DNA from: Basidiobolus meristosporus CBS 931.73
Taxonomy: Eukaryota > Fungi > Basidiobolomycota
Assembly (NCBI GenBank): GCA_002104905.1
Contig: MCFE01000823.1
Coordinates: 1 to 33,173, forward strand
Length of the DNA stretch: 33,173 bases
Reading direction: 5' to 3'
A model generated the notes under the pieces. That model was not told where the DNA came from. It saw nothing but the letters and a program-made list of their open reading frames with translations, and searched no databases. Made by a program: the position numbers and the translations under genes. This document shows positions 2,677-33,173 of the stretch, in pieces. Positions within the stretch are counted from its first letter, which is position 1; every line of letters begins with the position of its first letter.

Positions 2677-3025
2677 TGTTGTAAAATTCGTAATTTCCAC
2701 CTAAATATTCACCTAACTTAGTCACTTAGATCATTACCCTCAAATCCTAGAGAATACTGACCAAATTCCTTGTCGGGATTTACTTAGAATATTTTCACCA
2801 AAATGCCAGGTACCCAGAACATGAAAATTCTCAAAGTTGTCCAAACAGCCCCAAACTTTGCACACATGTTCTTGGGACCTTCCTTAACCTATTCTACGTG
2901 TTTGTAATGCCAAGACCAGGTAAAAGTATAAATACCACTTTTACATTCAATAAATCATTAAGTGAAAACCACATAATCTACTTGTTCTCCAAATCACTTC
3001 CAATATCTCCAAGACTCTTACAACA
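2677..3025 (+). repeat. Copia 5' LTR (349 bp)
   Basis: Direct repeat of 7013-7363. TATAAA at 2927-2932 and AATAAA at 2949-2954. Confidence 0.97.
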
Positions 3026-3037
3026 GGTTATGAGCCC
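3026..3037 (+). promoter_or_regulatory. Primer binding site complementary to the anticodon arm of initiator tRNA-Met (half-tRNA priming)
   Basis: GGTTATGAGCCC directly abuts the LTR CA and is the reverse complement of GGGCUCAUAACC. This PBS type is known from Drosophila copia and yeast Ty5. Confidence 0.85.
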
Positions 3038-6000
3038 CGAGCTGTCACTCTCTGCAATGTCTACTACTGCTATTACTGGAATTTTTCCCTCTGCTGAAAA
3101 GTTGGATGGATCTAACTACCAAGTGTGGAAGGTGAAGATGAAGATGCTGCTGCAAGAAAGAGGCCTTTGGGATATTGTCATGGGAGAAGAATGCCCTCCT
3201 AAAAACGTGGGAGAGGAAGCCTTAAAGTACCAGAAGAAAGAACAAAGTGCCTTTAACTGCATTTGCCTCAATGTCAAGGACAAATTGCTAATTCAATGCT
3301 CAAGAGCAAAAACGGCAAAGAATGCCTGGAAGGCATTAGAAGACACCTACCAGTCATGTTCAGCTGCCAAGAAAATGTATCTGAGAAGAAAATTCTTTAC
3401 TACAAAGATGCTGCCAGGAGAAGAAATGAAAAATCTAATTAACAGAATTACCCTGCTGGTAGATGAGATGGAATCTGTGGGCGTACCAACTACTGATGAG
3501 GATGTGATAGTTACCATCCTGAATAGCCTGACAGACGAGTTTCAGGGCCTTGTATCAGCCCTAGAGTCCAGAACTGAAGATTTGACCTTAAATTACGTAT
3601 ATGGAAGGCTCCTGGATGAAGAATTAAGAAAATCAAGCACCAATAAGAAGGAAGAAGAAAATGCTTTAATAAGCAATGATAACCAACAAAGGAGGTACCC
3701 AAGACCCTACAAAGGCAACAGCAACCTATTTTGCAACTACTGCAAAAGGAAAGGACACACATCAGACCGGTGTTTCAAAAAGAGAGATTATCAGCAAAAG
3801 AAGCCTGAATATGGAAATGCTGCAACAACCGAAGATAGACTATTCATATCTGCACTAAATATGACCACAAACAAGGATTCTCAGACGTGGTATATTGACT
3901 CTGGAGCTTCTCAACACTTTACACACCAAAAAGAACTTTTTACCCAATATCAAGAAATTCCAATTAAGAAGGTTTTCATGGGTGACGATAGAACACTTGA
4001 TGCAGTGGGAGAAGGAACTATCCAAGTAAACCTTAGAAGCAGCAAAGGAAGCCATACACTGACCTTTAAAGAAGTACTCTATGTACCAGAAATAGCCAAG
4101 AACCTACTCTCTGTAAGCAAGGCCACAGCAGAAGGACTCAGTTTCAGTTTTGACAATTCTGGATGCAGGATCACTGATCAAAATGGTGCTCATATTGCTT
4201 CGGGCATCACAGATCAGAATCTATACAAGTTGACTTATATTCCATCATATCTGGAAGCCAATATAAGTAACTTAAATGAAGAAACACCAATGCTTTGGCA
4301 CAGGAGATTTGGACACATCAATTTTGATTATTTGCGTAAAATGATCAAAGATCAGTTAATTTCTGGAGTGAAAATTGATCCCCCAGCTAATTTGGAGCAC
4401 TGTGAAGCCTGCATATATGGGAAACAAGCCAGACAACCGTTCAAGAGCTCTGGGTTAATCAAAACTAAGAAAAAATTAGATCTAATTCACTCAGATCTGT
4501 GTGGACCTATGCAAAATTTATCCTTAGGCGGGATGAAGTATTTAATCACTTTTATTGATGATTATACAAGATACACATGGGTCTACTTCATGGAGAGAAA
4601 GGAAGAAGCTCTGTCTAAGTTCAGGGAGTTTAAGGCCATGGTGGAGAGAGAAACTGGTGAAAAAATCAAGAAAATACGCTCTGACAATGGTGGAGAATAT
4701 ACCTCAAAACTCTTCATCCACTTCTGCAAAATTCATGGGATAAAGCAAGAGACTACTGTACCATACTCCCCACAGCAAAATGGAGTAGCAGAACGAGCTA
4801 ACAGATCAATAATTGATATGGCAAGATCTATGATCCATGATCAAAAATTATCCTATGATTTTTGGGCGGAATCAGTTGCCACTGCTGTATATCTTAAAAA
4901 TAGGAGTTATAACAGAATACTTCGTGATTCTACTCCATTTGAAGCATGGTATGGATACAGACCAAGTGCAGAACATCTAAGAATATTTGGGTGTACAGCA
5001 TATGCCAAAAAACTGGCCGGAAATCAGTCAAAATTTGAGCCAAAAAGTGTAAAATGCATATTTTTGGGCTACTGCAATGAGAGTAAGGCATACAGACTCT
5101 ACAATACCGAAGCAAAGAAGCTGATCAAGTCCAGGGATGTGTTGTTTGATGAAAATTCAAAATTTTCACAAAAAATGACATCAGATGATGACAAAAATTT
5201 GATCTCAAGTCCACCAATTGTCAGGATTGAATCAGAGCAAAACAATGAAAATTTTTACACTCCAGAGGACTCTACAACCGTGGTTCAGCCAGAATCAGTG
5301 CCCAGGAATATCCCAGAAGTGATCATTCCAGTATCAAATGCCCGGAGATCCAATCGGACAAGAAATAGCCCAAATTACTATATCAATGAGGGTACAAACT
5401 TAGCCTATGCCTATTCAGTCCATGTTGATGAACCCCAGACTGTAAAAGAGGCCCTAAATAGCCCTCAGACGAAGTTTTGGAGATCTGCAATGACTGAGGA
5501 ATATCAGGCACTGATGGAAAATCAAACTTGGGACTTAGTCAAATTACCAACCAACCGAAAATCAATTGGATGCAGATGGGTCTTCAAGACAAAATACAAG
5601 GCTGATGGTACAATTGAAAGATACAAAGCAAGACTTGTAGCCAAAGGATACTCTCAAACAAAAGGACTTGACTATACTGAGACCTTTGCACCGGTAGCCA
5701 AGTTTAATTCCATCAGATTAATATTGGCTATTGCAGCCAAATATAAGTTTTTTATTCATCAAATGGATGTAAAAACTGCATTTTTGAATGGAGAACTTGA
5801 TGAGGACGTGTATATGGACCAGCCTGATGGGTTTGTTGACCAAAATAACCCCCATTTGGTCTGCAAGCTTAAAAAGTCACTATATGGTCTCAAACAATCA
5901 CCGAGAGCCTGGAATTGCAAGATAGATTCTTATTTGGAATCTTTGAGTTTCAAAAGAAGTAATGCTGACTATAGTATATACTATAAGCCAGATAGAGCAA

Positions 6001-7001
6001 ATCCAGTTCTATTAGCTCTATATGTGGATGATCTTATTATAGCCGCCAATAACCTAGAAACATTGGAAGAGACTAAATCCAGCCTATCTAAGGAGTTCAA
6101 GATGTCCGATCTAGGAGAACTTAGTTACTACTTAGGGATTAAGTTCTCCATAGACAGAAGTACCCAGACTATTACCCTAAGCCAATCCAAGTATATTCAA
6201 GATATACTAAAGAAGTACAAAATGGAAGACTGTAAACCGGCAGCCACCCCAATGGAGACAAACCTTAACTTGGTCAAAACTCAACCAAATCAAGAGAGCT
6301 TGGTGCCATCTGAAAGCCCTGACTTTCCTTATCAATCTATGGTCGGCAGTCTGATGTATATCATGCTTGGAACACGTCCAGATATCTCATATTCAGTGGG
6401 AGTTGTCAGCCAACATAATCAGAATTATGGATCTGATCATATTGCAGCAGTTAAGCGGATTTTTAGATACCTAAAAGGAACTGCTGATATCTGCTTAAGA
6501 TACACTTATAAGGACTCAGAACAAGATCTTGTGGGATACTCTGATGCAGATTGGGGACGAAATTTAGAAGACAGAAGATCCACCACAGGATACACCTTTC
6601 TTTACTGTCAAGGAGCAATTTCATGGAATTCAAGAAAGCAACCAACCGTAGCACTTTCTACCACAGAGGCAGAGTATATGGCAGCCTGTGAAGCTACAAA
6701 AGAAGCAATGTGGCTAAGAAAGCTCTTTACAGATTTAGGCCTATGTCAAGAAACGCCTATTACTTTATTTCAAGATAATCAAGGATGTATACAATTAGGT
6801 AGAAATCCAACTTTTCATGCTAGAACCAAGCACATAGATATTAGACATCATTTCATACGTGAAGCTATAGAGAATAACTTAGTTAGCTTAGTTTACTGTC
6901 CTACAGATGAAATGATTGCAGACATATTTACCAAACCATTAGCTAGAGACAAGTTTGAATATCTTAGGTCAAAATTAGGACTAGTCAGTATGAACATTTA
7001 G
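3030..7001 (+). CDS. Copia Gag-Pol polyprotein (start at ATG 3030 or 3057)
   Basis: Gag KLDGSNYQVWKVKM; zinc knuckle CNYCKRKGHTSDRC; protease WYIDSGAS; integrase WHRRFGH..CEAC, HSDLCGP, SDNGGEY, QNGVAER; RT HQMDVKTAFL, LYGLKQ, YVDDL; RNase H SDADW, EAEY, RTKHID, ADIFTK. No stops. Confidence 0.96.
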   Translation: MSPELSLSAMSTTAITGIFPSAEKLDGSNYQVWKVKMKMLLQERGLWDIVMGEECPPKNVGEEALKYQKKEQSAFNCICLNVKDKLLIQCSRAKTAKNAWKALEDTYQSCSAAKKMYLRRKFFTTKMLPGEEMKNLINRITLLVDEMESVGVPTTDEDVIVTILNSLTDEFQGLVSALESRTEDLTLNYVYGRLLDEELRKSSTNKKEEENALISNDNQQRRYPRPYKGNSNLFCNYCKRKGHTSDRCFKKRDYQQKKPEYGNAATTEDRLFISALNMTTNKDSQTWYIDSGASQHFTHQKELFTQYQEIPIKKVFMGDDRTLDAVGEGTIQVNLRSSKGSHTLTFKEVLYVPEIAKNLLSVSKATAEGLSFSFDNSGCRITDQNGAHIASGITDQNLYKLTYIPSYLEANISNLNEETPMLWHRRFGHINFDYLRKMIKDQLISGVKIDPPANLEHCEACIYGKQARQPFKSSGLIKTKKKLDLIHSDLCGPMQNLSLGGMKYLITFIDDYTRYTWVYFMERKEEALSKFREFKAMVERETGEKIKKIRSDNGGEYTSKLFIHFCKIHGIKQETTVPYSPQQNGVAERANRSIIDMARSMIHDQKLSYDFWAESVATAVYLKNRSYNRILRDSTPFEAWYGYRPSAEHLRIFGCTAYAKKLAGNQSKFEPKSVKCIFLGYCNESKAYRLYNTEAKKLIKSRDVLFDENSKFSQKMTSDDDKNLISSPPIVRIESEQNNENFYTPEDSTTVVQPESVPRNIPEVIIPVSNARRSNRTRNSPNYYINEGTNLAYAYSVHVDEPQTVKEALNSPQTKFWRSAMTEEYQALMENQTWDLVKLPTNRKSIGCRWVFKTKYKADGTIERYKARLVAKGYSQTKGLDYTETFAPVAKFNSIRLILAIAAKYKFFIHQMDVKTAFLNGELDEDVYMDQPDGFVDQNNPHLVCKLKKSLYGLKQSPRAWNCKIDSYLESLSFKRSNADYSIYYKPDRANPVLLALYVDDLIIAANNLETLEETKSSLSKEFKMSDLGELSYYLGIKFSIDRSTQTITLSQSKYIQDILKKYKMEDCKPAATPMETNLNLVKTQPNQESLVPSESPDFPYQSMVGSLMYIMLGTRPDISYSVGVVSQHNQNYGSDHIAAVKRIFRYLKGTADICLRYTYKDSEQDLVGYSDADWGRNLEDRRSTTGYTFLYCQGAISWNSRKQPTVALSTTEAEYMAACEATKEAMWLRKLFTDLGLCQETPITLFQDNQGCIQLGRNPTFHARTKHIDIRHHFIREAIENNLVSLVYCPTDEMIADIFTKPLARDKFEYLRSKLGLVSMNI

Positions 7002-9431: not shown

Positions 9432-10892
9432 CTACCGGATCTTCACCAAAGTTGCGTATTTGTTCATCAAAGCGTCGGTTTGCATTGCATGCAATCCTTC
9501 TTTTTCGACCGTACTTATAACAGTCACATCCCCGGTTGATTTATTCTGCAGCAAACAAACGTAACCGGCCGGGAGAACACCTTCGCCTCCTGTTGCTTCA
9601 AAAGGCGTTCCCCAACCGAAATCCATATCTTCGCCGAGCAAATCAAACATACACCAGTTGGTAAATACCACATCAGCGGTCCAGAAAATCCGACCAGGAG
9701 GTTGGGTGTTCTCAGGGGCTTCCATATAACGAATTCTATTCTTAATGGCTTCAGGAGAAAGTTGCTCGTTTAAGGAGGATCTGATGGCCAGAGCTACGCG
9801 AGAGGTTGACTTGGCATCGGAAGACATCAGATCGTCACGAGAAACGGTGGTCATAAATAGTAGATTGAAGTTTCCGAGATAACGCCCACCAGACATGTTT
9901 TTGTTTGGTGCACGCTCTCGCCCATCTGCGGCCATTGCAACCGTCTCTGTTCCCGACTCCACGCTGGACCGTCCAAATCCTTGGGTGCGGGGAATTTTCG
10001 CACTTTCACGAGCACGTGTGATGACACTCCACAAGAGAGCAGTTAATGCATCACCCGTTGATATCCATGCATCGGAAGATTCTGTTAAAGCATCCGTAAG
10101 ATCTTTTTTCAAGTTGGCCAAAGCGCTGGCAGATATTCTCCACTTGAGAACTGCTGCCGGTGTGATGACAGGCATTTCTGTTGACACAGAAGGCATCACT
10201 TGGTAGCCTTTTGGAGCTGCTGGTGGTGAGGTCTCTGCTTTTAATGAGTTGCCGTCTTCAGCGAAAAATCGGCCAGGGGTGTGAGCCCAGTCTTCTGGGA
10301 TGGCTTGAAGATCAATAGACTTTCCACGAGCGATTTTAGACCAGACTTCAAGGAAATCGAGAAAGCCTCGTAGATCGGAGATGTAATGATGCAAGGAGGA
10401 GGCTACAGCCACGGTTCCGCAAGAGAACTATGAGAAGGCTTTTAGTTTGCATGGTTTATAGAATTCGCAACACGTTTTATACGTTACCTGTGTGACTTTT
10501 ACCGCTAGTGCGCTAGATGGTGTGGGTAAAAATACAACCGGTCGAGGAGACAAATCCTCGGCATCGCCGGTGAAGGGTGAATCTCTGCGATCGACCTGGA
10601 ATGCTGCACCTTCAGCATCCAAGGCGACATATAGTTCACCCTTTTCATTCGCACGAACAGTACCGGCAACTGGTGGGTATAGCTCCAGCGCCTCGGCAAG
10701 AGAAGATTTGAGAGTATCGACTACATCTTGCTCCTTTAGATGTTCGGGACGATGGAAGAAACGGTGGTTACTGATGTGAACAGGAGCACTGATGAGGTCC
10801 AGCCCATGCAGAGTGATGGTTGACGCGGAGGGAGAGCGATTATATTTGCTAGTAGGCTTAATAGTACAAGTCTCGACAGTACTTGAGGTCAT
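9432..10892 (-). CDS. BAHD/'Transferase'-family acyl-CoA acyltransferase (Tri101-like fold), 2 exons, ~466 aa
   Basis: Exons 10892-10488 and 10427-9432; 60-nt intron GTAACG...CATAG in phase 0. Motifs LELYPPVAG, HxxxD (HYISD) and DFGWG. TATAAA on the minus strand at 10967-10972. Confidence 0.92.
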
Positions 10893-11651
10893 GGTTCGAG
10901 GGATATTGAGAATGCGAATTTGCGGTGTGTGCAAGCAGTGAGCACGGCATAGGTGAGCATCATCCATTTATACTGCATTCCTAACGGTTTGTTGTCGAGG
11001 TCGGCAATGGTTCATTCTGGGGATTTTGGCGAATTGAGGATCTCATCAATTGATCAAGGCTGCGGACGGATTATTTGGAAAACCTGCGGAAATCACGTCC
11101 CTGGCCAAATACTGATCTGGCTAAAGGCCTCTGTTAATTGGCAGAGCTTGTGCTACGAGCCCTTGTTACGTAGTGGCGTTCACTAATTTGATGCGAGTAT
11201 CCCGATTGTTCTAGCCACACCTGCCCTATATACCAACATTTGTTGAATTGGCCCCAACACAACCTTTATCTGGAATAGTCTTTAACCAAAAAGCGGATCA
11301 CCTAAGGTGAAAAAGGGAGTAAGCTTTATGTAACATCTTGAGGATTGCACTTGGTATTTGCTGCTTAATCTTCATCAATGAGAACCCACTCTCTTTCATG
11401 AGAATATATGTGGATTTACCACGCACAAATCGAGATTACGAGTTGTATAAATGATCGAACTGATGTGGAGCTAGTAGATAGTTTGGAATTCCCTACGAAG
11501 AATACGTTGAAAAAAATCTAGAGACAATAGCCTCGACTGTAAGAATTTTAGCCCATGCCGGATCACTATCTTAGCTAGGCCATCTCTCGAAGTGAGGGTA
11601 TTAACGATACTACCCATCAATGGTTTTGGTAGCAATGTCTTTGCCATCAAC

Positions 11652-11912: not shown

Positions 11913-12744
11913 ATCAGAAGCAATACAGGTACTAGGATTGTCTAACAGGCGAGGAAAATGGTGAGCTGGTTGATCATCGAAGCTTTCCATCAGTGCACTA
12001 CTTGGATATGATACTCTGGTAGTATCTACGATACGTGCTACCGTCGGCACCCCTATTTAGCATGCTAGTTTAGGCCATTTCATGTGCGGCAATTCTCGGT
12101 ATTAATCCATCCTCACCAAACCTACAGCAGTATAGGCATTCACTCCTCCCTGGTGGGGCTGGAGGAGTAGAAGTGTGAATTCGGAGTGACCGCCATCCCA
12201 AACCGTTTGGTCTGTATGTTGTTCCGCAACAGAGCAAGTTGGATCTATGGTATCTCAAGCAACACCAAGATAAATTGGATCATTCCTCTAAGTTAACAGT
12301 GGATCGATTATTTCCTAAAACGAATACTGGTTCGGAGATTTTCAGCGCTCTTCGTGAGGCCGACCAATCAGGATCCCTATATCCAGGAATACTCAAATCG
12401 CACGAAGGTTCCGCGTTCACCGAAAATAACAAATCTTTAGAAAATAGAGACAAAGTGACGAGATGTAGATGCCAAGTATTTCATTCGCAGCTGATCGAAC
12501 TTCACTCCTTTAAGAACTCACCCTCGTTAAGCATTGTGCGACACACCTTATACACACGGAATTATTGATTGCAGACATCCAAGGTGCTATCAATATAGAA
12601 GGCGACCGACCCAAATGAGTGGTATGAGCCCAGAAACAGTCATGCTCAAGCGCATCGGTGTATCCAGACACGTTTGAAAAAGGTATTTATCATCTCAGTT
12701 TGGCACGGATAACCTCCATCCGGTCCTCCATAGCCGACTACATC

Positions 12745-13341
12745 ATGCAAGTACTCAACAAGCTTTTATTGATCCCCTTTGTTTTCATGGCACTATTCCA
12801 GACAGCAGCCATGGCCAGAAGAGTGAAGATGACTTACTACTGGGTCGCTAAAGAGAGCGAACATTCGGGATCCAAGAACGTCGCCATCAAAACTTGCTGT
12901 GGTAAGACAATTGCTATGGTTTCAAAATCCTTTGCAAATGCCGCCCGAATGGAAGGCACCGCACGTTTGAGTAGCGGAAAAATGATCAACCTTCGTTGCA
13001 GCTGTGGCGGCGGCTATAGCTGCTTCATGGAGCCCGACTCCAAATGGTATCCTTTTGGTCTAGGCACCAGAAGCAACGCCCTCAGGCCATTTATCAGTAT
13101 CTCGGCCAACGATCTTCCTTACGGTAGCAATGTTACGGTTGACCAGTTGAAGGGGTTAAAAATGGCCAACAGAGTTACTCACAATGGACGTGTCCGTGTG
13201 GATGACAAAGGTTGGAGCTTCGGCAGTAACCATATTGATCTGCTGGTTGGTGAAAAGAGGTATTACGAGTATATCTCCCGCAACTTCGGAACTCAACTCA
13301 AATACGTCGACATATGGATCTCCTGCAAGTTGCAACGATAA
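12745..13341 (+). CDS. Secreted 3D-domain (MltA-like double-psi beta-barrel) protein, 198 aa, intronless
   Basis: Hydrophobic signal peptide MQVLNKLLLIPFVFMALFQTAAMA. N-terminal TYYW motif. Three Asp motifs SANDL, VDDKGW and HIDL, spaced as in 3D domains. The family was recognised from motifs, not from a search. Confidence 0.72.
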   Translation: MQVLNKLLLIPFVFMALFQTAAMARRVKMTYYWVAKESEHSGSKNVAIKTCCGKTIAMVSKSFANAARMEGTARLSSGKMINLRCSCGGGYSCFMEPDSKWYPFGLGTRSNALRPFISISANDLPYGSNVTVDQLKGLKMANRVTHNGRVRVDDKGWSFGSNHIDLLVGEKRYYEYISRNFGTQLKYVDIWISCKLQR

Positions 13342-14614
13342 GACTGTACTACACTGGATATCATCTGGCCAGGAAACAGAGCAAATAAATGTCTTGTGAG
13401 CCCATCCTATCTTCATTCAAAGATTTCACCATAATTTCTTTATTCCAATTTGCTATATTTTATGCGATGATTGAATACGCTGACGATCAAATTGGAGTTA
13501 ACTGATTTTCACTACAAGTCATGTCATTCAATTAATCGAACCCCGGAATAGAACAAGCAACTTGGCCGTAACTCTGTTTGGAAGGTGGAGGAGTGTATCG
13601 TGGAGTAATTTGGGGATTACGTTCTTTTCAACCAATCCACGATTTGCAGCGGTGATAAAGGTCACTTCGTGTAATGGCCTCATGGTTTTGACATGCTTAA
13701 TGGAGATCGGGATTATATGGCATTGAGTATTGTTTTTCGTATAAAGCAAGATACTAGGTGGTGAATGAAAGGCATATAAATTGCCTATACTTGTCATTTT
13801 GCAAAACCTACCCGTCAGCTGATGCGGTATTTCATGTGCGTATTGAAAATCAGTATATATTTATGCCCTACGAATTCCAATTATCCAGGCTGGCATCATT
13901 ATTGAATGTTGAAGGCCAGTTTCTGGTGGCAGCCGTAATAGCCACACTTTGCGCAGTGAACTATTTGCTATTTGGCCATCAACCTTTCGGATGCAATAGT
14001 CGACTCCACCATTAACGAGAGAAACTCAGGGACTTTCTGTGAAAAGCACAAGAGAATAATGGCATTTGTTCTCTACTAGAAATCATCCATTCATCAGGGT
14101 TAGCTTCTGTATTCCATTTGCCATTTTGGATCCCTGGATAATTATTCGAACAACGGATAGTGCAAGATGATACGGATCTATGGTGATAGCACTAATATAG
14201 TATAGCTGCGAACACCAGCCACACATCGTGACAGCTCAATTGTCAATAAGCAGTGTTTACATTATACAATAGTCTTATGCCTTACAATTCAAATGTCAGT
14301 TATTGACAACTAGTTTGACTATCCCTAATGCAAACGCTTCCTTGTAATGCTAAAATGACATCCCGTTAGAAGCTTCGAGAACATAGCTTATAGGTCAATC
14401 GATGCTAATTATTACCATGTAATTGCACTAAAAAGTCTGTTTTCGCTTCATCTTAATGGAGAACAGATATCTTTGTACGAATGTGGAAGATTTGCAATGG
14501 CAAATGGTTTGTGCGCGACAAGCTCATTGCCATTTTGGCTGCGATACGCTCCGATAGCCCTTTCTACGCATTACCATTAAGGGTCTCCAGTAACGACATC
14601 TCACCTTCAACAGA

Positions 14615-16030: not shown

Positions 16031-17246
16031 TTATACCCCGGGTGCTGTTGCGTTAAACTGCTTGTAGGTATCTTTGAGCAGAAAGTCTTTGCCTTTGAGC
16101 ATGGTTACCAGTGTGCGACCGATGACGCCAATGCCAGGCATCTGAGCTGCACCATCATGTGCCCCAAGCGTAATCATTGCGGCTTTGATGATCTTGAATT
16201 CATTCAACTTCACTATGGCAGGGCTAGTGGGCGTATACTTCGCTTGAATAAGCTTTATGATGTTCTTCGCTGCCACAGAGCCCTGAAGCCGGGCGGCAAA
16301 TGCGAGTTTGTGGCCTTCGTCATTACAATCTCCAACCGCAAAGATGTGATCATGCGTCTGCAATTGCATTGTTGGGCGAACGCGGATTTCTTGAGTGATT
16401 GGATTGAGAACACCATCACCCAATGTGCTAGCAAATGAAGTGTTGAGGCTAGTATGACCGATGCAGGCAAACTGGTGTGTCAAAAGTTAACCCAATGCTG
16501 AGATCTGCCTACTTGGTGGAGCCACTTACCATCAAATCAGCCTCGATCTTCTCGCCACTAGAAAGGTCCCATCCCCGAGTTTCCGCAACATACCCCACCT
16601 CCCGTTCTTCAGCAGTTAGATTGACCCGCTGGTTATCCACCAACTTTACTCCGCGTTTGGTCATCTTTTCTACCAGTTTACGGCGCAGTTTGTCCGACAC
16701 ATCTGGCATGCCGGTTAAGATTCCATTGGCTACCAAGGTCACCTCTTTGTTCGGCAAATCAGTCAATTCTCCGACCAACTCGATACCAACTGAGCCTCCG
16801 CCTACGACGAGAATACGCCGCGCTTTTTCAACAGCCTCAAGAGCAGTGGTCAACTTTTTCAGGACATCCTGGTACATGTCGCCAGAGGGCTTCCCTGGCG
16901 TACCGTACTGGCTACCGGTGGCCAAAACCAGATAATCGAAGGCGATCTCACGCCCGTCGTCCAACGACACTCGATCAACAAATGTTTTCACCACCCGTGC
17001 GCGCTCGTGAACAACGGTGCCGGATGTGAAGATGGGGGCGTTTTTCAAAGGGATGAAGCACTTCTGGGCAAACCCCTTCTGGGTCACCGCGCGGACGAAT
17101 CCCAGGTTGTGGTGAAAGTGCTCGTGGGGCTCCACCAAGGTCACCTGGAGCTGAAGCTTCTTGCTGGCCTTGGCCAGTGTCTGGACCACCTCGAGACCAG
17201 CAAACGCCCCTCCCACCACCACGATCCGTGTTTCTGTGAATACCAT
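16031..17246 (-). CDS. FAD/NAD(P)H-dependent oxidoreductase of the AIF-like (AMID/AIFM2/FSP1) type, 2 exons, ~385 aa
   Basis: Exons 17246-16530 and 16471-16031; 58-nt intron GTAAGT...CACCAG. Motifs IVVVGGAFAG, FDYLVLATGS, ILVVGGGSVGIE and IFAVGDC. Confidence 0.92.
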
Positions 17247-30999: not shown

Positions 31000-33173
31000 A
31001 TGGCAGGTCATCATTGAATCTTACATTCATGTAGGTGCAATGTCTCAAATACAAGACTGTCTTAAGTTCACATGAGTATTGACCAAAAAGTGATATAATA
31101 GCGTTACATTGTTGACGGTCAAACTGTTTGCCCCATGGACAAGACTACTTTGACTCAACGCCATAAGTGAAGAGAAAAAAGACCATGTGGCTATTGTGGC
31201 AAGCCTCTCAGCCATGAAGCACTCAGACAGCATAGGAAGTATTACAAGGATCACGGCCAGTATTTTGCCACCCAAGTCATATTTGACCATTCATTGGTCA
31301 CTACTGTACCAACATTATCTTGCCAGCCAGTTGATACTTCTATATTGGCACCTGGCTGTCTTTGTCACCTTGGGCAAACTGAGTCAGGTGAGTTTGTGAC
31401 ACCTTTAGGCTCACCTCAGCCTTCTGAATATGGCACACAGAGTGATAGCTCTGACAAGGAAGGTTCACTGATGGATTTTGAGCCTATCTCCCCTAACAAC
31501 TGCACCATGTAGGAGCCCGGTCAAATCCCTATATGCATTGAGACAACACCCGTTGAAACAAATGCCAAGGATACTTTATGGAGCCAAGTGAGCCCAGTAA
31601 TCCATCTACTGGTGAATGATGTAATGTTGTGGCTAGAGAAGTGGCGCATTTCCACTAATATCAGTAATGGGGGCTTTAAGGATTCATTACTACTTCTTGC
31701 CAAAATCATACTGGGATGCAACTTACCATGTACATGGTAAAAGTAGACAACCATCATGCAGCTGGCAACATATGATCCAGAGACTGTCCTGATTCCAGCA
31801 TGTGTTAACAGTTGCATGGCATTCACATCCAAAAATGCTACCATTGCAATGTGCCTCAATTGTCAGGGATCCACCACCATTGAGAGAAAGCATTGTTCAC
31901 ACTCCAGATATATTCCCATCATACCCTGTCTGAGGAAGCTGATGTAGTCCAACAAATATTGCAAAGCTATACAGTACTGCACTCAGTATCAATCAAGTGC
32001 AAACATATCTGATATATTTGATGGCAAACATTACAAACAGCTAAGAAGCAAGGGCTACTTTGAAGGTATGTATGACCATGCCTTTGCTTTAGCACTTGAT
32101 GGATTCTCATTAAACAAGTACTCTACCAGCAAATCCTGCTGGCCACTGATTCTCATCAATCTGAATCTGCCACCCATCTTATGGTATCAGAGCAGTAATC
32201 TGATGGTAGTCTCACTGGTATCTGGGCCTAAATCACTGTCCAACCTGGCTAGCTACTTGTATCCATTGCTGAATGAATTTTGTTTGCTTTCCAGTGGGAT
32301 AACGGTAAATGGCCATCATGTAAAAGCGCATATTATTATCTGCATTGGAGATACCCCAGCAATCAGCAAGATAGCAGGTTTTTCTGGGCACAATGGATGG
32401 TATTGCTGTCAAATGTGTGAGATCCAGGGTAATTTCTCCATAACTCACACACATTATTATTACCCAAACACCAGCACTAAGAACATCATCTTTCCACAGA
32501 GAGAACATACAGAAGTAAGCATGCAATTGCAGCAAAGTTGGCAAGCTATAAGCCATTGGCCAGAATATGGAATCAATTGGAAACCAGAGATACTTAAAAT
32601 AGAGGGTATCTGTTGGAGCAAAAGCTTTCCACTGGGAGCAATGCATTTGCTTTTCAACAATATCCCTATACTGATGACCAAGTTGTACATGGGGCATTTC
32701 AAGCTAAATGAGCCCTTTGAGATACTGGAGAAATTTGAGAGAATTGGTAAGATATTACAGAGTATCTGCTACCCTAAGTACTTCTCATAGGCTCCAACTA
32801 ATAATTATAAGCATATGCGACAATACAAATGTAAAGACTGGATGAACTGGATGTGTATTTATTCAAGTGGTATTCTGAAGCCATTCCTACCAAGAGTACA
32901 TTGGAAGCATTGGGAGTCATATGTGGACATTGTAGGAATATTTACCCAGAAGCAGATCACCAATGTCAACTTGACACATCTACAGCTGTTGCGTGAGGAG
33001 TTTGTGACAGGATTTGAGTGGCTATACTACAAACATACAGCTGAATGTGTAGATCTCTGCCACTACTGTATCTATTCTCTACTCCATCTTGCACATTGTG
33101 TGGAGAATATTGGGCCTTGCTTCACCTTTTGGAGTTTCCTATGAGCAGATGTGTGGGGAGTTAGGAAGACAAG
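31000..33173 (+). pseudogene. CACTA/En-Spm (Tnp2/Transposase_21-type) transposase pseudogene
   Basis: One frame from 31000 contains RPCGYC..LS...RQHRKYY, CVNSCMAF..CLNC..YIPIIP, DIFDGKHY, ALDGF..WPLILINLNLPP..GPK, GDTPA, CQMC, AMH, YK..DW..W..YS and WSF. It has 11 stops; the one at 33142 follows an apparent small deletion. Confidence 0.9.

Follow-up and report, generated by a model that had tools for sequence, protein, structure and literature searches.

What does a compact secreted protein with the motifs of a bacterial cell-wall enzyme do in a fungus, and how did it come to be there? The question is raised by a gene at positions 12745-13341 of the forward strand of contig MCFE01000823.1 from Basidiobolus meristosporus CBS 931.73 (assembly GCA_002104905.1), whose 33,173 nucleotides form the window analysed here. 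The gene is best read as an intact member of an anciently acquired family with the MltA/3D fold, secreted in type, and as a paralog that has diverged yet remains constrained. The probability attached to this reading is about 0.72, a figure that leaves the choice of substrate aside. An original prediction, made from the letters of the window, had proposed a secreted, intronless 3D-domain protein of bacterial origin, with possible incipient decay.

An intact open reading frame (ORF) runs from an ATG at 12745 to a stop at 13339-13341 and encodes 198 residues with zero internal stops. It is collinear with all homologues, the sole gap being one codon near the C-terminus, so the gene can be taken as intronless, as had been proposed. 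The N-terminus resembles a signal peptide, with Lys6, residues 7-17 as its hydrophobic core (Kyte-Doolittle mean over 11-mers up to 2.87) and Ala-Met-Ala at residues 22-24, followed by RRVKM. By these rules (hydropathy plus an AXA site) the protein carries a predicted N-terminal secretion signal, a feature kept in the paralogs, and this part of the original prediction stands. Confidence in the structural model described below, expressed as predicted local distance difference test (pLDDT), is low before residue 22. The principal elements of the gene are as follows.

12745-13341, + strand: complete intronless coding sequence (198 residues plus stop) of a compact MltA-like or 3D-type protein, from the ORF, paralog identity and the deposited model P0001.
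12745-12816, + strand: predicted signal peptide, residues 1-24 (AMA, then RR), from the hydropathy profile and the -3/-1 Ala rule.
12817-13338, + strand: predicted mature MltA-like double-psi beta-barrel domain with a reduced insert, residues 25-198, from the AlphaFold2 (AF2) model, VIA-align, Foldseek and Atlas.

The deposited model P0001 on this contig has 176 residues and begins at Met23 (12811). Paralog DNA similarity starts at 12737, 8 nt before the ATG at 12745, and further upstream only one 40-bp element aligns. The locus of the paralog P0004 encodes the same signal peptide upstream of a likewise shortened model. For both reasons the ATG at 12745 is probably the true start, and the deposited model probably omits the signal peptide. 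The two deposited models thus start at an internal Met (12811 versus 12745 in the 176-residue window copy; 1035 versus 1101 of locus L011 in the 177-residue P0004), which looks like an annotation error.

Assignment of the 198-residue protein to the 3D/MltA superfamily depends on profile and structural evidence taken together. The protein itself has zero Pfam matches at E ≤ 1, among them none to PF03562 or DPBB_1, and does not reach the PF06725 (3D) gathering score of 23.8 bits. A word search returns eleven Basidiobolus paralogs and orthologs at 59-77% identity, named '3D domain-containing protein' in UniRef and UniProt, as well as one metagenomic PF06725 protein at 40% identity. The closest paralog is B. 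meristosporus P0002, whose protein is 77% identical. With the family profile A1, about 100 bacterial or metagenomic proteins bearing PF06725 are found at E values of 1e-70 to 1e-32, and homology to PF06725 is transitive through this profile (E 1e-70), since the protein alone lacks a Pfam match. Pfam 3D is matched by 27 of the 32 members of the mixed alignment A3, with a best bacterial E value of 5e-12. Fungal members lie mostly below the Pfam cut-off, with scores of 17.4 bits for Rhizophagus P0061 and 24.1 bits for Geosiphon P0149. Searched against PDB sequences, the A3 profile ranks Escherichia coli MltA first (E 0.005) and aligns its D261, D297 and D308 with the three motifs of the family. 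An initial scan of bacterial genomes with Basidiobolus-specific patterns found zero relatives; the named bacterial genomes in which relatives are found belong to Myxococcota, Myxococcales, Haliangiales, Nannocystaceae and 'Deltaproteobacteria' metagenome-assembled genomes (MAGs).

The predicted structure points the same way. A model built from a 115-sequence alignment (pLDDT 90.6) replaced an earlier one from 12 sequences (pLDDT 76.5; best Foldseek E 0.025). VIA-align against the PDB places MltA-family structures at all of ranks 1-6 (Z 8.6-11.5, 157-171 residues aligned), led by E. coli MltA 2pi8 with Z 11.5 over 168 residues. YuiC follows with Z 8.3, and expansins reach Z of about 7 over about 85 residues. 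Foldseek with the 115-sequence model gives E 1.7e-5 and probability 1.00, so that the structural comparison with MltA suggested in the original prediction comes out in its favour. For the Atlas model, the TM value is 0.90 to a Myxococcota 3D cluster and 0.75-0.90 over 3D and MltA clusters. The model is thus that of an MltA-like double-psi beta-barrel. The 3D domain originally proposed accordingly holds through the profile link and the six top-ranked MltA structures, not through a direct Pfam match at E ≤ 1. MltA in the strict sense (GH102, PF03562 plus PF06725, with full insert domain and N-terminal region) would nevertheless be the wrong name, as only 168 residues align within MltA positions 78-335. 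The first ~77 residues of MltA and ~90 insert residues find no counterpart, and because the latter lie inside the aligned span, the insert (MltA domain B) appears reduced. Nor does the model correspond to an expansin or loosenin: expansins match it less well than MltA does, and it lacks a second domain such as the CBM63 of expansins.

The residues expected at the active site are largely in place. The published work on YuiC assigns the catalytic carboxylate to MltA D308/YuiC D162 and binding of the N-acetyl nitrogen of the -2 sugar to D297/D151 (PMC4499186). The third conserved Asp is MltA D261/YuiC D129, and T99/T91 orients the catalytic Asp (PMC4499186). Conservation was counted over 248 relatives, comprising 143 bacterial-type and 105 eukaryote-type rows.

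13231-13242, + strand: HIDL (residues 163-166), in which D165 is the predicted equivalent of MltA D308 and YuiC D162, from a profile alignment that includes D308A chains; Asp in 241 of 248 relatives.
13198-13212, + strand: VDDKG (residues 152-156), in which D154 is the predicted equivalent of MltA D297, from profile alignment to MltA; Asp in 246 of 248.
12832-12843, + strand: TYYW, in which T30 likely corresponds to MltA T99 and YuiC T91 by an estimated register; Thr in 232 of 248.
13102-13113, + strand: SAND (residues 120-123), with N122 in the column of the first '3D' Asp (MltA D261) and D123 next to it, from profile alignment to MltA.

D154 and D165 are 11 residues apart, exactly as their counterparts are in MltA and YuiC. 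The register of T30 comes from alignment ranges: YuiC chain residue 83 is paired with model residue 22, which would set T30 opposite T91 if the stretch is ungapped. H146 (246/248) and G148 (247/248) are essentially invariant. All three motifs named in the original prediction (SAND, VDDKG and HIDL) are present, and its second and third aspartates are conserved at identical spacing. Its first, D123, lies one residue past the canonical column, which holds N122. That column is Asp in 136 of the 143 bacterial-type rows and Asn in 99 of the 105 eukaryote-type rows, 88 of which carry Asp at column 123. In these alignments the eukaryote-type clade is recognised by N-D, by HNGC in place of HDGC and by GW in place of GG.

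The Asn in the first column bears on whether the protein is a catalyst at all. Many fungal double-psi beta-barrel proteins are non-hydrolytic, and a groove of this kind could bind chitin or another wall polymer, or loosen walls, in the manner of expansins, loosenins and cerato-platanins. The fold common to expansins, loosenin, barwin and cerato-platanin (Z 5.7-7.6) and the Asn found across the fungal clade would agree with such a role. The structural match to MltA, however, rises to Z 11.5 over ~168 residues, while that to expansins covers only ~85. Moreover, the catalytic Asp, its partner Asp and the Thr are conserved in more than 93% of the 248 relatives, which argues against mere binding, since binding alone would not require it. 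A non-catalytic glycan-binding or wall-loosening protein is thus quite improbable.

The window copy itself has departed from its relatives in an unusual way, most visibly at its cysteines.

13180-13191, + strand: HNGR, in which Arg149 (codon CGT, 13189-13191) replaces a near-invariant Cys, present in 246 of 248 relatives.
12895-12900, + strand: Cys51-Cys52, of which Cys51 is conserved and Cys52 is unique to the window copy in alignment A5 and the wider set.
13324-13326, + strand: Cys194, invariant in A5 and likely bonded to Cys149 in other members; here left without a partner or perhaps joined to Cys52.

The Cys-to-Arg change in HNGR, suspected in the original prediction, is therefore real. 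No other sequence has Cys at position 52, whether among the 114 others of A5 or the 247 others of the wider set. Three disulfides, C149-C194, C85-C93 and C51-C87, would account for the pattern of cysteine loss. In 19 rows that lack the other four conserved cysteines only the Cys149 and Cys194 columns stay Cys, which is the reason for pairing these two; C85 and C93 are lost together, and C51 and C87 are lost together in six rows. Through C149R the window copy would lack one half of C149-C194.

Its sequence divergence is likewise uneven. The coding sequence is 77.8% identical in nucleotides to the nearest paralog locus, and the pairwise comparison with P0002 gives a nonsynonymous rate (dN) of 0.12, a synonymous rate (dS) of 1.29 and a ratio (omega) of 0.09. 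By three-point estimates, branch dN is ~0.10 for the window copy and ~0.02 for P0002, and branch omega is 0.16-0.20 versus 0.02-0.03. Tajima's relative-rate test counts 34 unique substitutions in the window copy against 4 in P0002 (p = 1e-6), an asymmetry that persists with B. ranarum outgroups. Among 24 columns conserved at ≥90%, the window copy deviates at three and the other Basidiobolus paralogs at none or one; its departures include P141A, at a site that is ~96% Pro, and C149R. By these measures it is an old, solitary paralog among transposons, with protein evolution about five times faster.

Such figures invite the view that the copy is a decaying or already non-functional duplicate, with pseudogenisation starting in a transposon-rich region. 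The loss of a cysteine and a proline at nearly universal sites, the 34-to-4 excess of unique substitutions and the position of a solitary copy flanked by copia, gypsy-type and tnp2 elements would all fit. Yet the 198-codon ORF has stayed intact after dS above 1 with a branch omega well below 1. The copy retains T30, D154, D165, H146 and G148 together with all but one of the six conserved cysteines, the upstream 40-bp element is conserved, and the gain of Cys52 leaves the number of cysteines even. The intact frame, the low omega and the retained catalytic residues and upstream element are why the gene is not considered dead, and decay is accordingly held to be improbable. The copy appears relaxed or diverging, with purifying selection remaining on its codons. 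Incipient decay, as originally suggested, is too strong a term for a gene with omega of ~0.1-0.2 over dS above 1 and an unbroken frame, even though its protein evolution is accelerated.

The family to which this diverged paralog belongs is widespread in early-diverging fungi. The genome of B. meristosporus holds at least nine, and besides the contig of the window copy five or more others carry them. Two copies lie in tandem on MCFE01000813.1 and two on MCFE01000281.1, a 141-kb contig bears a cluster, and there are several others. At least ten copies occur in B. ranarum. Further members are found in Kickxellomycotina (Dimargaris of the Dimargaritales, Tieghemiomyces), Mucorales (Lichtheimia, Circinella, Absidia, Mucor, Radiomyces, Phascolomyces), Endogonales (Endogone, Jimgerdemannia), Glomeromycotina (Rhizophagus, Funneliformis, Glomus, Geosiphon) and the chytrid Geranomyces. 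Another comes from Calcarisporiella, presumably of the Calcarisporiellales. An exhaustive profile search yields 1264 matches at E ≤ 1e-3, and about 105 of their 50%-identity representatives fall in the eukaryote-type clade. A partial internal domain duplication is seen in the 306-residue P0121 of Funneliformis geosporum, where an N-terminal half-copy precedes a full copy.

In an IQ-TREE analysis of 77 rows, eukaryotes separate from bacteria with support of 100/100, Basidiobolus is monophyletic (100/97) and Mucorales group with Glomeromycotina (98/90). The eukaryotes together with P0063 and P0073, two proteins from 'Deltaproteobacteria' MAGs, form one side of a further branch with 100/100 support. 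Rooted on bacteria, a 140-row tree has the metagenomic P0246 diverge first and the chytrid pair next, which makes the latter first among named fungi. This comes close to the vertically inherited eukaryotic clade that the original prediction had named as a refutation, with the difference that the clade is MltA-like and not expansin-like. The simplest reading of these data is a family of bacterial origin that entered fungi by a single early transfer and then underwent vertical descent, duplication and loss in Dikarya. The direction from bacteria to fungi is preferred mainly because the superfamily at large is bacterial and its range among eukaryotes narrow, and an ancient date because at least nine paralogs exist alongside relatives in Dimargaritales, Mucorales, Endogonales, Glomeromycotina and a chytrid. 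Two metagenomic proteins with bacterial-looking features fall within the eukaryote-type clade or at its base: P0158 combines a lipobox-like LASC with HDGC, and in P0246 DUF11 and CBM2 occur. These proteins may be traces of the donor lineage or of reverse transfers, and they lower the support for a clean split between eukaryotes and bacteria.

A recent horizontal gene transfer (HGT) into Basidiobolus, or bacterial contamination of the assembly, would offer a simpler history. Bacterial relatives at 36-45% identity and the lack of introns could be cited for it. One report also describes many bacterial genes acquired by Basidiobolus (PMC7466969). Against this, eukaryotic retrotransposons and a gene with an intron lie on the same contig, the GC content of the gene is like that of its surroundings, paralogs sit on many contigs and in B. 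ranarum, and the monophyletic Basidiobolus copies (100/97) nest within a multi-phylum fungal clade on a long stem. As far as the data go, the contig neighbours, the trees and the fungal members from several phyla refute recent transfer and contamination alike, leaving them highly improbable. Horizontal acquisition as first proposed thus survives insofar as the closest non-eukaryotic kin are bacterial PF06725 lipoproteins, but the event was neither recent nor specific to Basidiobolus.

What the protein does can be approached through its better-known relatives. It would belong, as a small secreted enzyme, to the MltA/3D lytic-transglycosylase superfamily. Its fold would be a double-psi beta-barrel whose insert is much reduced, probably with three disulfides, in which the catalytic Asp (D165, equivalent to D308), the N-acetyl-binding Asp (D154, equivalent to D297) and the orienting Thr (T30) are retained. 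By analogy with MltA and YuiC, from which we infer both the lytic-transglycosylase chemistry and the substrate, the catalytic Asp would first protonate the glycosidic oxygen of a polymer of beta-1,4-linked N-acetyl-hexosamine. It would then activate the sugar's own O6, leaving a 1,6-anhydro end without the use of water.

Chitin or chitosan of fungal walls, own or foreign, comes close to an even bet as the substrate. LysM is fused to the domain in at least six Mucorales proteins of the eukaryote-type clade, and CE4 deacetylase domains occur in two long eukaryote-type proteins (687 and 1644 residues), the longer being sister to a 1365-residue Geranomyces protein. A CBM19 fusion is marginal (19.7 bits against a cut-off of 20.1), and in a 1212-residue eukaryote-type member a metallophosphoesterase is combined with EGF repeats and a GH18 match below threshold. 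P0168, P0243, P0207 and P0175 are among the long proteins of the clade that have several domains. YuiC turns chitopentaose (penta-NAG) into a disaccharide with a 1,6-anhydro end, and the groove of MltA accommodates chitohexaose (PMC4499186; PDB 2pi8). The fusion partners and the action of YuiC on chitopentaose make chitin at least as plausible a target as peptidoglycan, and retention of the family by fungi of very different ecologies would lean towards a polymer of N-acetylglucosamine (GlcNAc) such as chitin. This is a lean, not a result, because LysM and CE4 serve peptidoglycan too. A fuller version is put forward tentatively: the fungal mini-MltA would be a lytic transglycosylase directed at chitin or chitosan, in the walls of the fungus itself or of other fungi, that cuts without water and leaves 1,6-anhydro-GlcNAc ends, a route of wall remodelling lost in Dikarya. 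The window copy would then have neofunctionalised, its disulfide rewired so that Cys52 replaces Cys149 as partner of Cys194. The rewired bond shares the tentative standing of this combined proposal.

Bacterial peptidoglycan has perhaps one chance in three of being the substrate. Under this alternative, which is possible although the odds are against it, the protein would be a secreted antibacterial or symbiont-controlling lytic transglycosylase used against bacteria in the guts of amphibians and reptiles. All solved relatives (MltA, LtgG, YuiC) act on peptidoglycan, and the closest bacterial kin are wall-associated lipoproteins. B. meristosporus carries at least nine copies and B. ranarum at least ten, families with many copies and some fast-evolving members are typical of genes of offence and defence, and Basidiobolus is described as a gut associate amid bacterial communities. 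The family is, however, common to obligate plant symbionts, mycoparasites, saprobes and a chytrid, and some of the modules fused to it lean towards chitin. In Gram-negative bacteria, furthermore, peptidoglycan would be shielded from an external enzyme by the outer membrane. Binding without catalysis, or some other activity, is an unlikely remainder.

Several points weigh against the reading of an anciently acquired, still functional MltA-like enzyme and against its chitin-directed form. Searches with the single protein of Pfam (E ≤ 1), NCBIfam and PDB sequences gave nothing. The active site as aligned is not identical to that of MltA or YuiC, because the first-Asp column is Asn in the fungal clade. 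Loss of Cys149, together with P141A and G143R, could have inactivated or destabilised the window copy recently, and the low omega is compatible with this since it is averaged over a long branch. The grouping of the eukaryotes with P0063 and P0073 joins two long branches, and a 140-row tree with intermediate metagenomic sequences keeps the split with support down to 65-67. The midpoint root is unstable, with eukaryotes nested in one analysis and the root on the eukaryote stem in the 77-row tree; the direction of transfer depends on the rooting, and the root is not secure. Dikarya are absent from a sample of only ~30 named members. As for the substrate, LysM and CE4 also act on peptidoglycan, and the chitin-specific partners fall below Pfam cut-offs.

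The setting of the gene adds two non-coding features.

12299-12338, + strand: 40-bp conserved non-coding element, ~400-450 bp 5' of the ATG, common to the P0002 and P0004 loci.
13384-13389, + strand: AATAAA hexamer 43 nt past the stop, a possible polyadenylation signal, read from the sequence.

The element is 90-92% identical among window 12299-12338, L009 5607-5646 and L011 642-680, with the remaining flanks unalignable and coding dS above 1; it is not present upstream of P0003. It may serve the three genes as a common cis-regulatory element, or else represent a 5' exon. A segmental duplication with the P0002/P0003 locus was considered and ruled out because only the coding sequence and this one element align. 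Within the window, tblastn finds no second copy or fragment of the mini-MltA family. GC content is even over the window.

The neighbours on the contig include a copia element, a PF02458 transferase gene split in two ORFs, a Pyr_redox_2 fragment and a tnp2-type transposase. The copia-type retrotransposon with long terminal repeats (2898-7001, + strand) has one uninterrupted 1367-residue gag-pol ORF (gag, protease-region barrel, integrase, RVT_2) and may still be active. The PF02458 (BAHD-type) acyltransferase gene (9432-10967, - strand; deposited model 466 residues) comprises ORFs at 10428-10967 and 9432-10412, and the 15-nt gap between them holds a stop, consistent with a very short intron or a disruption. 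A 245-residue Pyr_redox_2-family ORF (16509-17246, - strand) is probably a single exon from a larger oxidoreductase gene; at 32068-32790 (+ strand) lies a tnp2/Transposase_21 fragment. Elsewhere in the genome, two genes of another bacterial-type family, PF11958 (BPSS1860, Burkholderia-named), adjoin the P0002/P0003 tandem pair (L009 752-2936, MCFE01000813.1).

Taken alone, the window gene is one more paralog of a database-labelled family, and it and its paralogs are already public under the automatic name '3D domain-containing protein'. The literature searched holds no paper describing the 3D/MltA family in fungi and no MltA/3D-type lytic transglycosylase characterised in any eukaryote. The claim of new biology made in the original prediction is tempered by the UniProt label. 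Wider interest attaches to the family as a whole, a little-studied and somewhat surprising part of early-fungal biology that has been conserved and duplicated, with LysM and CE4 fusions, in chytrids, Zoopagomycota and Mucoromycota. If its members cut chitin, they would constitute a new class of fungal wall-remodelling enzyme and a new route in early-diverging fungi. If they cut peptidoglycan, they would represent an ancient, widely retained means of killing or managing bacteria, of relevance to Basidiobolus in the gut and to fungal hosts of endobacteria. The window copy is a natural experiment in either case, having lost a near-universal disulfide cysteine with its catalytic residues retained.

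Among known systems, expansins, loosenins, cerato-platanins, barwin and GH45 enzymes have in common with the fungal family a double-psi beta-barrel core, secretion and action on walls. They differ in their weaker structural match (Z 5.6-7.6 over ~80-97 residues) and in their catalytic or binding motifs, and no profile-level sequence link to fungal or plant proteins of this fold was found. A parallel of another kind is offered by GH25 lysozymes and tick Dae2, eukaryotic genes that derive from bacterial wall enzymes. Lytic transglycosylase genes of family GH104 in Umbelopsidales have been attributed to HGT (PMC7928374); as a description of the present family that report was set aside, the family being a different one. 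In all three cases a eukaryote domesticates a bacterial glycan-cleaving enzyme, although the folds and families are unrelated.

The best structural matches are E. coli MltA and its relatives (CAZy GH102; PDB 2ae0, 2pi8, 2pnw, 7esj, 3czb, 6qk4). The 3D region aligns with theirs by profile, D297 and D308 match D154 and D165 with the same 11-residue spacing, and the TYYW of the window protein appears to resemble the MltA Thr99 strand. Unlike MltA (~345 residues), the window protein has 198 residues, a reduced insert and no PF03562 match. Its six cysteines have no equivalents at the corresponding sites of MltA, a eukaryotic signal peptide takes the place of the lipoprotein anchor and, as in the rest of the fungal clade, Asn stands in for the first Asp.

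Closer in scale are YuiC of Bacillus subtilis and the Sps proteins (YocH, YabE, YorM; PDB 4wjt, 4wli, 4wlk), minimal 3D-domain lytic transglycosylases. YuiC is likewise a stripped-down, secreted MltA-like enzyme (Z 8.3, root-mean-square deviation 2.3 over 92 residues), whose D151 and D162 match D154 and D165 and whose T91 would match T30 in the register estimated above. Mucorales members carry LysM as YocH-type proteins do. YuiC is a domain-swapped dimer (PMC4499186) and spans about half of the fungal domain; the fungal family keeps an ARMEGT region and a disulfide-rich insert, both missing from YuiC, and single sequences do not detect the similarity between the two.

Nearest of all are the compact PF06725 lipoproteins of Myxococcota and 'Deltaproteobacteria' MAGs (P0040, P0063, loci L001-L008). 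The bacterial forms have a lipobox, an Asp/Glu-rich linker, HDGC, Asp in the first-Asp column and GG after the DD motif, and they pass the Pfam 3D threshold, which the fungal forms, with HNGC, N-D and GW, mostly do not. At 36-45% identity, and with the same full-length architecture and six-Cys pattern as the fungal proteins, these lipoproteins are the closest sequences outside eukaryotes.

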